Shown in pieces: positions 25,710 to 33,895 of a stretch of 64,000 bases of DNA. Both the position numbers and the translations under genes were made by a program. Origin of the DNA: Chlorokybus atmophyticus (taxonomy: Eukaryota > Plantae > Mesostigma and Chlorokybus algae); contig RHPI01000026.1 in NCBI GenBank assembly GCA_009103225.1, positions 815,103 through 879,102 on the forward strand, in the 5' to 3' direction. Each line of letters opens with the position of its first letter. Positions within the stretch are counted from its first letter, which is position 1. The notes beneath the pieces were generated by a model. That model was not told where the DNA came from. It was given only the letters and a program-made list of their open reading frames with translations, and ran no database searches.

Positions 25710-26591
25710 TGCTGCACTTTGATCTGATTCTGCTTTGTTTTGCAGATTGTTTTTCTTGGCAAATTTTTGCGTTTCACAGTGCTAACTTCCGTGGCGCGAG
25801 CTTGGCAGCTTCCCGCAGGAGGAATGCTCTAACTTTCGACAAAGTTGTTAACGTCGGCAACGTTGTCGATGTTGCTGGCGGCGGCGGCCTGTGGCAGGTG
25901 GTGGTAGGAAACAACAATGTGTCATGCGAAGCGTGGTGAGCATACGTGTTAAGTTTAGTTCGACGGGAGGTCAGGTGCTGAAAGGTGTTGTGCTTCGAGG
26001 CAATCCGCCATGAGCACTCTGCTTGCACTGCATTGCTAAATGTTTTCGTCCGCGTCGTTGTCGTCGTCGTTGTCCTCAACATGGTCGTCATCTTTGTTTC
26101 CCCTTGATCGTGCTACGTTGAACACCAAGCAGTAGTTATTCAACCTTGAACACATAAGAAGTTGGATCTAGGTGCAGCCAGGGCACTCCATAACCGCACG
26201 TGGTTGTCTGTCAGTCTGGATTATGCGATCATGAGGTTGATGTTGGAGACACGCACATATTGGCCGTAACGCAAGCTTGCTACCTCCTTCACCTGGACCA
26301 CTACTTGAAACACCAGGTTGGTCGGGCACGAGCACACCACCACAGCCACCATCATATCGTCAATATCAGCATCATCATCTTCGCCGTTGAACTCGTCATT
26401 GTGTATGCAATTTCTTACATGCACAACTTACGTCCAGTAGGTGTGTTCCATGGGCCGTGTTGTGCCACATGGCTTCGAGGAAGCTGCCGCCTGCCAACCT
26501 GAGCCATTCAGAGAGCAGGTGTGTGCACATATGACAATGCTGACCTGCAGCGTTGTCAGCCTCGATGAAGCAAGCATATCTTTACCACAGG

Positions 26592-29500
26592 ATGCACGAG
26601 TACGAGGTTGGCAAGGCGGTCGGCAAGGGCGGTTACAGCATTGTGCATGCAGGAGTCCGCAAGTCAGACTCCACACCCGTCGCCATCAAGTGCATAGGTG
26701 CGTGTGCGTGTGAGTGTGCATGTGTGGGTTGTGGTGTATGCGCGCTTGTTGTTTGCAAGCCCCACTGAGTACACGTAACCAGATCTTGCAAGCTTGACGG
26801 AGAAGAAACGCGAGCGCTGTCTCCAAGAGGTGGAGCTTCTGCGTGGGCTGCGCCACCCCAACATCATCGATATGCTCGACGCGTTCCCACACGACGATCA
26901 GGTCAGACACCACACGACAGTCGCATATCACCACAACCTGAGAGGCTTCTAAGCTTGAGACTGTGTGTGGCTCAGCTCATTATTGTGTTCGAGTGGGCGG
27001 AGCGCGGCGACCTCAAACGCCTCATCAAACGCGCCGCTGCTTCAGGAGGAGGAAAAGGAGGAGGAGGAAAAGGCTTTGATGAACGCACTGTCTGGCACTT
27101 CATTGCGCAGGTCAGATTCAGCTTGCGTCGCGATGGTTGCATCACTTGTGTGCGTAGAGTTTGCTTAGAAAGTAGCAAGTTGCAAATCGTCAACAGAACG
27201 CGCACGTATATGCACGCGCGCCCATCCACTCATACGCAGCCATGTGCTAGCATGCTCCACACATACCCATGGTCACATGCACACACAGTTACACACCATG
27301 CACGCAAGCACCCAGGCATTAAGGCAGGCAGGCGCTCGCGTGTACACGTGCAACGCACACATGCGCATGAGCGCGCTAAGTTGGTGCATGTCACTGCATG
27401 TCAGTTACGTCGTCTGCAAAGTACTATTTGTCTGAGTGAGGCATACGCTAGTCAGCTCCTGTGTGGTGTAGCTCATAGCAAAGATGTCGTCTTTGCTTAC
27501 AGATAACGTCCGCCCTCGCCTTCATGCACGCCCGCCGCACGGCGCACCGCGACGTGAAGCCCGCCAACGTGCTGGTCACGTGCGACGGGACCCTCAAGCT
27601 GGCGGACTTGGGGCTCTCGCGGGAGTTCTCAGACGGGACGCTCGAGGCTTTCAGCAAGGTAAGAGTGCACGTGGACGTGTGCATGCTTGCCCGTGTGCAT
27701 GCCTGTACCCCACGTGTGAAGTACAACACAACGTTGAACACCAGCCAATGCGGTGCAGGTTGGCACGCCGTATTACGTGGCGCCAGAGGTCGTGAAGGGT
27801 GTTGGATATGACTGGAAGAGCGACTGTTGGTCGCTCGGATGCGTGGCGTACGAACTCCTCACCCTCAAGTATGCTAAAATTCCGCCTGCAACCGCACGCA
27901 CGCACGCACGCACGCACCCACGCACAGACACGCGCACGTTGCCATGCTCAAGCTGATGGTTGTTGTCAAGCATTCCCTGAGTTAAATTGAAGCACATATT
28001 CGTTAGTCCGAACAGGCAGTAGTAACGAGTGCATCTTTCAATGTTGCTGTTTCAACCACTTGGGTTTTGTTCACAAACACTTCCCCTGCTTTGTCATGCA
28101 TCACCCGCTCACAATCAAACCACACCCAGGTCCCCGTTTGAGGCCGAGGGGGGCGCCAACCTCTACGACGTCTTTGTCAAGATCACCAAGGGCGACTACT
28201 CCCCTCTCCTCCCCTCCCAAGCCTCGACTCCCATGCGAGAGGCGGTGCGGGCGCTGCTGCAGCTCGACCCTGGCGCGAGACCGGACGCCGAGAGCGTGCG
28301 GAGACTAGCCGTGAGGATGATGAAGGGGGTGAGTGGGTGGGNNNNNNNNNNNNNNNNNNNNNNNNNNNNNNNNNNNNNNNNNNNNNNNNNNNNNNNNNNN
28401 NNNNNNNNNNNNNNNNNNNNNNNNNNNNNNNNNNNNNNNNNNNNNNNNNNNNNNNNNNNNNNNNNNNNNNNNNNNNNNNNNNNNNNNNNNNNNNNNNNNN
28501 NNNNNNNNNNNNNNNNNNNNNNNNNNNNNNNNNNNNNNNNNNNNNNNNNNNNNNNNNNNNNNNNNNNNNNNNNNNNNNNNNNNNNNNNNNNNNNNNNNNN
28601 NNNNNNNNNNNNNNNNNNNNNNNNNNNNNGGGGGGGGGGGGGGGGGGAGGGTTTGTGTGTTGATATTCTGATCTGCAGAGTGGTGGAGTGGATGCGGTGA
28701 GTGTGATGGGAGGTGTGTGGGAGAAGATGGTGGTGATGGCGAGTGCGGGCAAAATGCAGGTGCGCATGCATTCGTATATGCTTTGGGATCAGGCATCCTC
28801 TTTGTGCTTTGAGGTGTGCGCGCGCGCGCGCGCGCGCGTGCGTGCATATGTGTGTGCGCTCCAATGCACGCACGCGTGTGTGCGCGAGCATGTTCGTGTG
28901 CATGTGGTTTGTGCATGCGTGTCTTACACGTGTGTGCACAGATCCATGGCGCTATCGACCGCTTTACCTTTGCAGAGCCCAGTCGCCAGGTATGCAATGG
29001 CTTCTGTTGGCTGTCATTACAGAACACAAGCAAGTAAACACAAGCAATAAAGAGCAGTCCACGAGAGAGAAGTCTTATGGCTGCTTGATTGCACTAACAA
29101 ATGACGGGTCTTTGATTCAGGGCCCGGCACGCCAGTTTGCCCTCTTCCATACGCTCGCATCGCAGCTTTTAGACTTGTGCACGGCCGCGCACGCCAACAA
29201 CACCAAGGCATCAGCCCCCGCACTCACCTCAGGTGAAACCCCACGCAACACGCGCATCACATGCAAGCTGTGCATCTCACCTGCTTACAATGGCAGGTTA
29301 TGAGGAGACAGTCATGCTGTTTGACACGCCTGCTGCACGGACCCAAGCCGCAGCGTGCCTCGTAGCAGCTGCAAGATGTGTCGTAGACAAAAGCACGGAC
29401 ATGTTTGAAGACAACATTGCGGATGGATATGGCGCAGTAAGCACACGGGTTGTGTGGACATGTTGTGCGTGTGTGTGTGTGCATGTAACACTATTAACTG

Positions 29501-30575
29501 CTTTTTAACAGGCAGCTTGTGGCTTTCTTGACATGCTTCTGAACGCGGCGATAGTGAGTGTCAAGCCCAACGTTTTTCCGCCTGCGCTTCCGCTCGAAGA
29601 GGGTAATGGCTTTACCGAGGATGACGTGGAGATCATCGATGGCGACAGTAGTGGTGATGAAGACATAGAGTGCAACATTGACGACCAGCATATTGGAGAT
29701 GAGAGTAATGTTGAGTGGGAGGCTAGTGACAAAGAGGACACGCTTGCGCCTGCGGGCGTATACAACATGTTGGGTTGCGGCGCAGCGGTCGTGGTTGTTG
29801 TTCCAGGCAACAAGTTGGCGTGGCAGGAGGGCGTGCGCACGTTGGAACATGTAAGCACGTCTGTGGCGGCGGGCGCAATGGCCGCAATTGGACGCGCGCA
29901 GGACCACTCCACTCTCCTTGCGCGTGAACTCGCGGCCCTGTCTGCCGCGTCCTCACGCGCCTCCACGCACGTGAGCTCCTCAATCACTGCGCAACACTCC
30001 GCCGCCTCAGCGCGCATGCATCAGGTACGTGTCTTGTGCACGCGTATGCATGTGTATGTGAGGCGTTGACAGTGTGCTGATGGACGCGCGCGCGTGCGTC
30101 CGTGCGGACGTGTACATGTGTGTGTGTGGCGTTGACATGCCGCGCTGGTAGATGCGTGCCAGCGTTGAGGTGAAGGAAGCATCTGTGGCTGCCAAGCAGA
30201 GCGAGTTGGGCGCTGTGCAAGAGAGGCTCGCATGCACGCAGCAGGTGCGTGTGGGTTCGCACATACTTGCATGTATTTGCATATCACTGGTACACCTACC
30301 TCAAGCATGCATGTTGTACGGGTTGCAACAAGTTGGGTCTCCCTACACAGATGTTGGAGAGCAAGTTGGCAAGCGTGGCAGGAGGCGACGGGTCACAGCC
30401 CGCTCTGAGGGCAGCTTTACGAGGCATCAAGGAGGAGATGAAGGTCATGGATGCGCAGGTGAGAGCACCTGGTTGTTTACAACAACCTCTGTTATGTGTG
30501 CATGTAGCTGATTGTTTTGTGTGCTTCTGTCTGCGCAAGATTGCTTGGCATCAGCATCGCCTCCTGCGGTCATGA
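26592..30575 (+). CDS. NEK6/7-like NIMA-related kinase with a C-terminal IFT57/HIPPI-like domain
   Basis: Kinase motifs [57 protein letters not shown]. Downstream in-phase exons [52 protein letters not shown] and [27 protein letters not shown] resemble IFT57. N-gap 28342-28629 sits at the junction. Confidence 0.75.
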
Positions 30576-31644
30576 CAGCAGCTTTGGACAGTGCAATGCC
30601 CTCGATCAGACTAATGCTGCATACAATGATTGCGCCAGACATGATGAGCAACCGCGCAGACGCCAACGCAGAGGTCCGCGAGTTCGCATGCATCTGCGCC
30701 CTGCATTTTACTGGTGGTGCTGATGATGGTACGTTGTGTTTCCAGGTGCAATTGTATACAGGATTTCCCAGGCGTGTCCACGCAGCAGAAGGTTGCCAAA
30801 AAGCAAGGGACCGGACACATACATATATTACATGCCTGTCTGATGTGAACTGTTCCCACATGCGATTTTCTTCTCACTGCTCTCTGGTGCAGGTGACAGT
30901 TCTGTTGGAGTGTTAGTGTCTGCCTCCTCCAGCAGGAGTTCTGCTGCAACACACAAGCTTGGCCAGCAAGTCATCTTGTGTCTTAAACTGCACAACTCGT
31001 GCATAGAGTAGAGGAAGTGGGTGCATAACCCGTGTACCCGTGCTGTGAGGCAACAATCACAATCACTTTCTTAAACAAGCAGCACAACAGTTGTTCCAAC
31101 TTTTGCAGGTGTTTGCGCTAACAAACTCGCAATGACATGCGAGGAAGGCCCAACTGCGGTCAAAACTCTCTCAGCGAGCGAGCTCTTATGCCCATCCTGA
31201 TTAACGTTACATGACCTGCGTGCGCATAAAGTAAGAAAACACACACATGGCATAACTGGTACATAAGGGCACAAGGCAAAGGTGTTTCAGATGATTGAAA
31301 CCGTTGCCACTACTACTTAGCAGTAGTGGCAAGCAAGGACTTGTGCCATACGAAGTGAAAGGTATCAAGTGCTTGACACCCGTACAATCACAAGCAGACA
31401 GAACACGCACATGTGCGCACGCATTGGCACATGTCTACGCATATGCATGTGCAAGAGTGCGCATACTTATGCACACTTGCGTATGCACGTACTCCTATGA
31501 ATCTCTTCTAAGGAACTCAATATGCACACGCACGCGTGCTCGCTCGCACGCGTGCTCGCTCGCACGCATGCACGCACATACGCACATGTGCATGCATGCC
31601 TGCACACACACGCACATGCGCACGCGCACCCGTACGCACATTAC

Positions 31645-31867: not shown

Positions 31868-33895
31868 CACACGCAACATAAGCGCATCTGTACATGTGCA
31901 TGCATACGCATGCACACATGCGTATTTGAGGCTCTCAACTAGCAAAGGAGTGCATTGTTACCGCATCATAAACTTGGTCGTTGCGAGGGAAGTCGCCGAC
32001 CCTCCGTGGCAACACGTGGATGTGTACGTGCGGCACAGTCTGCCCCGCAGCCGGCCCGTCCTGCAGGAATGCAGTGGTGCATACAATTGCACGGTTGTCG
32101 TCACATAACCTTAATTTTAACAATTGCATGCTTGACATCACATCAGTGCACGACTGAGCGCATGAGTACGGGAAGCGGTAAGCGCGCCAATATGAAGCTA
32201 AAGCTCGGATAGGACATAGTTATCACTTGCACACATGCACGCATGCGCTGTACACACACGCGCGGTGCATACACAGCACACACATCCACCGCACATGTGT
32301 GGTGAGGTGAGGAGTACGCAGGACACATGCAAGTGTACGAACACGTTCAGCACGCACATCCATGCGCATGCTATTTGTATCTGTGCAACACACTGCATAC
32401 CTGTATGTATGAGCACATCTTGTGCATATGCTGCACCTACGCACACACAGGCGCACGCACACACCCCCCCACCCCCACACCCCACTCACCCACCTGTATA
32501 GCGAACGTGAGCGACTGCGCGCCAAAGTGCCTCTCGACAGCGTGTCCGACGCGTTGTGCGGTGCGCCAGAGGTCGGAAACCTCCTCGGGCCGCAAGTCGG
32601 TGAAGCGGGGCACGCGGCGGCGAGAGAGGATGAGGACGTGTGTGAGGATGAGAGGTGTTAAGGTGGGCAAGGAGCATAGGGGGAGAGGGGGAGGGGGATG
32701 AGAGGGCGTGTGGGGAGGATATGACCTGCGAGAGAAGGGAATGAGCAATTAGCGGATGAGATTACGTGCACACGCACACGTGCTTGCACAAGCGTGCGCA
32801 TGCACACACAAGTCCCAAACAGTAACACACACCGATGCATGTGCCCACCCGTTCTCGCGTGCACGCGCACACGAGCACGCATCTGTATACTCTACCACTT
32901 ACCCACTCACTCACTCACTCCCTGCTGCATCCACTCAGTGTGTTCTGCAGGAAGAGAGTGGTCGTACCTGGGACGACCGGTTTGAGGTTGACCATCGCGA
33001 GGGCGTGCTCGGACCAGAAGAACGCCTCGAACGCAGGCACTTTGTACGGACCAAAGTCGAATGTTGTGGTTGGTGTGTCAACTGCTGTCGGGACTGACTC
33101 TGTGTCTTCAGCCCGAGGGTGGGAAGCCTGACAGGTAGTTGTTGTTGTTGGTGGTGTGCAGAGGTTGGTACAACTTGGTGTGCGCGCTTGAGCGTGAAGC
33201 AACACATCAAGGGCAGGAGATGGTGCAACAGCGTGTGTGTGCGTTGCAGCTGCACAAGTTTTTTAACGTGTGTGCACCAGTGTAAACGTGTTGTATGTGT
33301 GTGTCTCTTGGCGCATGCATGCGCGTGTGCGCATGACATTGCAATAGGCCTAAGCATACACGCGCATGCACACGCACACGCACGCATACGCATACGCACA
33401 CCTACACGTGCACACACAAAACTACCAACACACAGCAATGGCAACACCTTGTCTGATGACGCCATCGTCCTGAAGCTGATGCGCGTCCGTGAGGCGAGAC
33501 GGGTCCGAGCAACAGTCGCGCGCAGCAAACAAGCAGGAGGGAGCTGCAATCAACAACACACACTACCAACATTAGCAACAAACCAACATGGCATTGCCTC
33601 TTCACAAGCAGCACACCGCGCGTTATGGTGCTTGCTAGAGTGATACGACTATGGGTACATACATTCGCTTGAATGTATGTACCCATAGTTATGAGTAACA
33701 TGTACTACTAGTGGTACACACGTAAGGTTACATATACGCAACGCAATGCATATCAGCCTCTCTGATGTAGGGAATTGTTGCTGATGCCGTCACATACTCA
33801 GCAACAGTGCATGCATGCAGTGAAACCTGGCGGTTGAGAATGAGGTGGCGTGCCGCCAACGTCGCCGCTGTCGTCAGCACCGTTCCCGTCGACAT
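31645..33895 (-). CDS. FHIT: Fragile histidine triad protein (bis(5'-adenosyl)-triphosphatase)
   Basis: FDFGPYKV...[27 protein letters not shown]; [20 protein letters not shown] (HIT motif); [17 protein letters not shown]. Exons include 33895-33827, 33543-33448, 33127-32968, 32725-32723 and 32639 onward. Confidence 0.95.
32640..32722 (-). other. U12-type (minor spliceosome) AT-AC intron, 83 nt, in FHIT
   Basis: 5' end ATATCCTCC; branch site CCTTAAC 17 nt from the 3' end; terminal AC. Removing it restores the conserved PGHVL reading frame. Confidence 0.85.
33648..33689. repeat. Perfect 19-bp hairpin with a 4-nt loop in FHIT intron 1
   Basis: ACTATGGGTACATACATTC-GCTT-GAATGTATGTACCCATAGT. Confidence 0.9.

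Follow-up and report, generated by a model that had tools for sequence, protein, structure and literature searches.

A NEK6/7-type kinase joined to a diverged IFT57-like tail in the streptophyte alga Chlorokybus atmophyticus, and its possible link to intraflagellar transport

Gene structure and transcript at the locus

The window analysed here is a stretch of 64,000 nucleotides of the Chlorokybus atmophyticus genome (assembly GCA_009103225.1, contig RHPI01000026.1, positions 815,103 to 879,102 of the forward strand), and all coordinates below are positions in it. The region is eukaryotic and intron-rich. On the plus strand of the window, exons of a NEK-type protein kinase are followed by exons that resemble the intraflagellar transport (IFT) protein IFT57, with a run of N between the two groups. 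An earlier note, made from the letters alone, had proposed that the two halves are fused, with the caveat that the N gap could hide a stop codon and a new start. We find that they very probably form a single expressed gene, which encodes a NEK6/7-type kinase and a diverged copy of the whole of IFT57. Joining the exons with a phase check gives 15 coding exons and 669 codons including the stop; the exon flanks are all AG/GT, the phases agree, and there is no in-frame stop before 30573. That the two halves are one gene is supported by a spliced contig, by a public gene model that already fuses them, and by orthologs of the same architecture.

The spliced contig is Logan contig record 1 of a public sequencing run (X1); it is 3317 nt long, has zero mismatches to the window, and is spliced at each predicted intron with GT..AG ends (12 joints tabulated). 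The RNA status given in the run record is only a guess, and since the contig lacks every intron of the model, its source can only be spliced RNA. The last kinase exon, K6, ends in ...MMKG followed by GTGAGT, in phase 0 and without a stop, exactly as the earlier note had read it, and the N gap (28342-28629) begins 14 nt into the intron that follows. At the joint 28327->28678, the contig connects K6 to the junction exon E7 and removes the entire gap as an intron. E7 (81 nt, 27 codons) is free of stops and in phase 0 at both ends, and from there the contig keeps a single frame through all IFT57-like exons, as far as the TGA (30573-30575). The suspected stop and new start are thus not borne out, the gap being intronic in this contig and the frame carrying across it. 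The kinase mRNA spliced into 28679 is stop-free, and no alternative continuation of it was observed. Two other runs, X2 and X3, gave unspliced genomic pieces only, none of which spans the N gap.

The likely start codon, ATG 26469, lies in an exon at 26469-26518 (16 codons plus 2 nt), which the 5' loose end of the X1 contig reads as spliced to 26591 and whose peptide is also the N-terminus of the public model. K1 (26591-26697) carries the Gly-rich loop and the VAIK lysine (Pfam Pkinase profile positions 1-32, phase check), and K2 (26783-26901) the helix C glutamate (Pkinase positions 38-71; X1 piece 26781-26897, joint 26897->26972). K3 (26976-27110) is placed by X1 joints and by tblastn of orthologs; at 27030-27070 it contains a Gly-rich insertion of ~7 residues between subdomains V and VI, which is absent in all orthologs compared. 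The HRD catalytic loop, the DLG motif and the activation loop are in K4 (27503-27658; Pkinase E 1.2e-12), GTPYYVAPE and DxWSLG are in K5 (27759-27868; Pkinase E 2.7e-11; X1 joint 27868->28130), and the end of the C-lobe is in K6 (28130-28328; read and translated, and present in X1). The intron that bears the gap occupies 28329-28678. At the right edge of the gap (28630-28648) there is a run of at least 18 G, and two X1 contigs stop in G runs there; this homopolymer may be the cause of the assembly gap.

E7 (28679-28759; joints 28327->28678 and 28756->28939) encodes a short linker and the first helix of the IFT57-like domain, and includes an ATG at 28706. Ib (28942-28989) encodes the family motif FTFAEP, corresponding to LHPLYFAEP in an ortholog (alignment columns 260-280), and is supported by X1 joints. 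The CH-like domain continues in Ic (29121-29232; helix QF..F..L...LL; X1 piece 29118-29229), where the Pfam IFT57 match of the public model begins, and in Id (29297-29436; DGYGA; X1 piece 29294-29436). Ie (29512-30024; X1 piece 29512-30022) contains the end of this domain, a disordered acidic linker, two Trp motifs and the start of a coiled coil, which extends through If (30152-30244) and Ig (30351-30458; IKEEMKVMD), both with X1 joints; a weak tblastn match links Ig to the Mesostigma protein P0014 (E 0.27, 29.8% identity). The last coding exon (30540-30575, with TGA 30573-30575) is given by the X1 joint 30456->30538 and the piece 30538-30675. The IFT57-like exons listed in the earlier note are therefore real and in phase; it had missed E7, and the likely start is supplied by the upstream exon at 26469-26518.

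Outside the coding region, a short upstream open reading frame (ORF) opens at 26405 in the 5' leader (26405-26520), and another upstream ATG, at 26450, is out of frame and precedes the likely start by 19 nt. A GT..AG intron of 72 nt lies in the 3' untranslated region at 30674-30745, ~100 nt past the stop codon; the loose end of the X1 contig at 30675 continues with the sequence at 30748, and the contig extends ~1.1 kb further. On the minus strand at 31935-32141, an ORF with an FHIT-like histidine-triad motif is convergent with the kinase gene, and the 3' ends of the two may overlap.

The kinase and the tail

The public gene model of this locus is the JGI model Chlat1 7200 of Chlorokybus atmophyticus (617 aa, P0001 here), which was the sole protein found in an exhaustive search of representative sequences with exon Ie. 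Compared with the X1 contig, P0001 is wrong at four exon boundaries: K5 is shortened (27831-27868), with a loss of 13 kinase residues; the 48-nt exon Ib is skipped; Ie is ended early (29970-30024 affected); and an unsupported last exon at 30893-30916 is used instead of 30540-30575. The public model thus needs correction in four places. The protein searches and the folding described here used single exons or P0001 as queries, and the scores refer to these.

The Pfam Pkinase profile matches K1, K2, K4 and K5 separately in an exon-wise scan, and P0001 with E 2.1e-48. Among solved structures, NEK7 is the top match of both K4 (E 1.7e-12) and K5 (E 8.8e-10), and the distant relatives retrieved by the whole-protein search carry NEK6-subfamily names, so that on its sequence the kinase is fairly labelled NEK6/7-like, as first proposed. 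The β3 lysine of VAIK, the helix C glutamate, HRD, DLG and APE are all readable in the exon translations, and a Ser is present in the activation loop before GTPYY; judged by these residues, the kinase looks catalytically competent. Human NEK7 and NEK6 are the closest solved relatives; the Chlorokybus kinase has DLG instead of DFG, and the Ser before GTPYY. NEK6 and NEK7 have a short N-terminal extension and otherwise only the kinase. In a quick, midpoint-rooted tree with long branches, the algal fusion kinases form a clade of their own beside the animal NEK6/7 representatives; P0001 falls in an algal kinase clade (SH-aLRT 99) that does not include the two animal NEK6/7 rows; the careful tree search was unfinished and P0024 and P0031 are badly cut with very long branches, and the tree is usable for coarse grouping only. 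K6 is ~48-61% identical to its green-algal orthologs in Mesostigma, Volvox and P0013 and 30-48% identical to more distant members of the family (tblastn). Run X1 also contains a contig of a paralogous kinase, which matches the gene only in the HRD region (27544-27576) at 90-95%, implying that at least one further related NEK is expressed.

For the tail, P0001 matches the Pfam IFT57 family (PF10498) with 44.5 bits (E 1.4e-11, profile positions 35-172), and its residues 270-617 score 47.4 bits, the gathering cut-off being 40 bits. A hidden Markov model (HMM) built from the ortholog tails matches E7, Ic, Id, Ie, If and Ig colinearly (Id at 145-194, Ie at 176-249 and 313-384, If at 385-414, Ig at 426-450), and its matches abut at exon joints, If continuing Ie directly at 384/385. 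In the alignment, E7 is the first helix of the family (..EKLKLL..), and the last exon matches the family ending (IG...QLL, with IGV..QQLL in orthologs). Between the kinase and this first helix, the linker is as long as that of Mesostigma, so that the gap is not expected to contain a coding exon. The alignment also changes the assignment of one motif: WQEGVRTLE, which had been read as the counterpart of W.LEVERV in IFT57, is better matched to the second of the family's two Trp motifs, and VEWEAS...TLAP is the first.

An AlphaFold (AF2) model of the P0001 tail, built with the ortholog alignment, has a mean predicted local distance difference test (pLDDT) score of 74. It consists of a helical domain, a disordered acidic linker (pLDDT <50), a helix of ~95 residues and a second helix, and in this predicted form the layout of the tail is that of IFT57. 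The helices within residues 10-132 make up the domain that matches CH domains, and the helices 216-309 and 315-341 have a pLDDT of ~90. The top matches of the helical domain are the CH domains of augmin, Ndc80, alpha-actinin, CrIFT54 and IFT81, with Z scores of 7.6-9.1. Together with the Pfam score, the CH-type fold and the long coiled coil agree with the proposal of an IFT57-like tail.

Relatives in flagellate green algae and ciliates

A survey of the architecture, which the earlier note had suggested, found about 35 proteins with both PF00069 and PF10498 in a whole-protein search. They include the 'NimA-related protein kinase 6' of Volvox carteri and of Scenedesmus (P0003, P0038), proteins of Gonium, Astrephomene, Chlamydomonas incerta, C. 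eustigma, Haematococcus, Dunaliella, Tetradesmus and Sanguina, and proteins of a pedinophyte, of the prasinophytes Cymbomonas, Pycnococcus and Pseudoscourfieldia, and of Mesostigma viride. The PF10498 matches of the orthologs are near full length (E 1e-33 to 1e-60, profile positions 1-360). The nearest relatives of P0001, the top 16 after the query itself, all carry both domains. The IFT57 layout, that is, the CH domain, the acidic linker, the two Trp motifs, the coiled coil and the MD..IG..LL ending, is colinear from prasinophytes to Mesostigma and Chlorokybus.

The green-algal proteins (P0003, P0038, Mesostigma Mv11907, which is P0014, and probably CNK6) have the same order as the Chlorokybus gene, a NEK followed by a full IFT57-like region. 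The Chlorokybus kinase is 46-59% identical to theirs; its tail shares with theirs FAEP, G.G..C, the two Trp motifs and the MD..IG..LL ending, and is much more diverged, with 14-24% identity to the ortholog tails. The volvocine proteins have long low-complexity inserts that Chlorokybus lacks, whereas the Chlorokybus kinase has its Gly-rich insertion. Canonical IFT57/HIPPI, an IFT-B2 subunit (PF10498), shares with the Chlorokybus tail a CH-like N-terminal domain, an acidic linker and a C-terminal coiled coil; in contrast to it, the Chlorokybus copy has a kinase attached, and its sequence has diverged so far that phmmer does not reach the solved IFT57 chains.

The same architecture occurs in a different supergroup, judging from a published description: a preprint on the Stentor kinome (bioRxiv 10.1101/168187) reports two NEKs with a C-terminal IFT57 domain, SteCoe_18659 and SteCoe_22983, states that the architecture is present in other ciliates, and speculates on a link to IFT. 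The novelty implied when the fusion was first noticed therefore does not hold, the architecture being widespread in green algae and published for ciliates. In Chlamydomonas, CNK6 has been found in the flagellar proteome (PMC2171396). Only by way of the names given to the Volvox and Scenedesmus proteins do we tentatively place CNK6 in the family; papers on Chlamydomonas CNK4 and CNK11 and on Nek phylogeny mention neither an IFT57 domain nor CNK6. In summary, the Chlorokybus fusion is genuine and of ancient origin, and it adds a diverged member to a NEK-IFT57 family that is found throughout the flagellate green algae and has been described in ciliates; as an architecture it was known before.

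Some kinases of the same clade have little IFT57 signal, P0027 scoring 22.6 bits, below the threshold, and P0046 having none. This suggests that the tail evolves fast in several lineages. The kinases P0040-P0055, from environmental assemblies and 770-930 aa long, group with the fusion family and have no detectable IFT57 domain; their tail may be too diverged for detection, or may have been replaced.

Possible targeting to IFT-B and other explanations

NEK kinases control the length and disassembly of cilia, and to our knowledge the route by which they reach their ciliary substrates is mostly unknown. Canonical IFT57 sits in the IFT-B2 subcomplex by its coiled coil and CH domain, beside IFT38, IFT20 and IFT54. 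As far as the accessible part of the published account goes (PMC4818760), IFT57 is in a stable IFT-B2 complex with IFT38, IFT20, IFT54, IFT80 and IFT172. From this position of the canonical subunit, the tail would most likely target the kinase to IFT-B, or to the sites of IFT-B assembly at the basal body, perhaps by occupying, or competing for, an IFT57-type position. While the zoospore flagellum is assembled, controlled in length or resorbed, a kinase placed in this way could then phosphorylate substrates in the IFT machinery or the axoneme. By analogy with IFT57, we consider such docking of the kinase on IFT-B through its tail possible rather than probable. As a whole, one gene of the NEK-IFT57 family with a tail that targets IFT-B is the explanation that we favor, with some confidence. 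A bolder version, which we put forward as a speculation with the balance clearly against it, is that NEK-IFT57 fills the IFT57 slot, or an added slot, in some IFT-B2 complexes and so gives kinase-carrying IFT trains in zoospore flagella. The fast evolution of the tail would then reflect a switch of partners specific to this lineage, in an alga that is flagellate only briefly, and a single origin of the green-algal and ciliate fusions, if there was one, would make NEK-IFT57 an ancient regulator of IFT that has been overlooked.

Several results weigh against this explanation. Scanned exon by exon with Pfam, no IFT57-like exon matched at E<=1; phmmer against solved structures gave chance matches only (E >0.2), with no IFT57 for exons Ie and Id and no IFT57 chain for the P0001 tail; a feature search of the ESM Atlas with exon Ie gave no usable match; and in a Foldseek search of the PDB the tail model had no match below E 0.4. 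A word-index protein search returned nothing for exon Ie and only itself for the P0001 tail. The Z scores of the CH-domain matches are moderate, and chance alone can give helical models such values. The X1 transcript is an assembled contig, so that it does not prove that both halves are on single molecules. A literature search for functional studies of NEK-IFT57 members (binding, localisation, phenotype) found none. Finally, the PF10498 score of 44.5 bits compares with 116-203 in the orthologs, partly because the P0001 model is faulty, and the Chlorokybus tail has another residue in place of the conserved WLL-motif Trp; the low score and the lost Trp imply that the tail may no longer bind IFT-B partners.

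The last two observations lead to the main rival explanation, in which the fusion is real and the tail has lost its docking on IFT-B and acts as a generic CH and coiled-coil module, for dimerisation and trans-activation, for binding to microtubules or the basal body, or for other coiled-coil partners. The strong divergence of the tail and the loss of the WLL Trp would fit such a module, the scores of P0027 and P0046 suggest weak constraint on IFT57-specific surfaces, and the closest folds are the microtubule-binding CH domains of augmin and Ndc80. However, the full IFT57 layout has been kept colinear from prasinophytes to Chlorokybus, which fits an IFT57-like interaction better, and we regard the generic module as rather unlikely.

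The remaining alternatives concern the junction. In addition to the fusion mRNA, an internal promoter or start at ATG 28706 could give rise to an IFT57-like isoform without the kinase, in competition with canonical IFT57 or with the full-length protein. The ATG is in frame and at the start of the IFT57-like part, and transcript starts are invisible to contig data; however, there is no separate contig with its start in E7, and conservation accounts for the Met, an internal residue that several orthologs share in the alignment. An isoform of this kind is quite improbable. Least probable of all is that two adjacent genes, a kinase and an IFT57-like gene starting at ATG 28706 or in the gap, were merged falsely by contig assembly and gene prediction. 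This ATG does come right after the gap, the content of the gap is unread, and a contig that spans two genes is no proof of a single transcript. Against this, the splice from the K6 donor to 28679 keeps the frame open and so obliges kinase mRNAs to run on into the IFT57-like exons; the same fused architecture is present in more than 30 orthologs, which come from independent genomes and transcriptomes; and the Met at 28706 lies within the first helix of the family, where it is conserved.

With one gene and an IFT57-like tail as the favored reading, the gain at the level of the locus is that the assembly gap did not create the fusion, and the NEK-IFT57 family extends to the earliest-branching streptophyte algae. 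A NEK welded to a copy of an IFT-B subunit would be a testable answer to the question of how NEKs reach their ciliary substrates, and it can be tested in Chlamydomonas, in which mutants, tagging and total internal reflection fluorescence (TIRF) imaging of IFT are routine.

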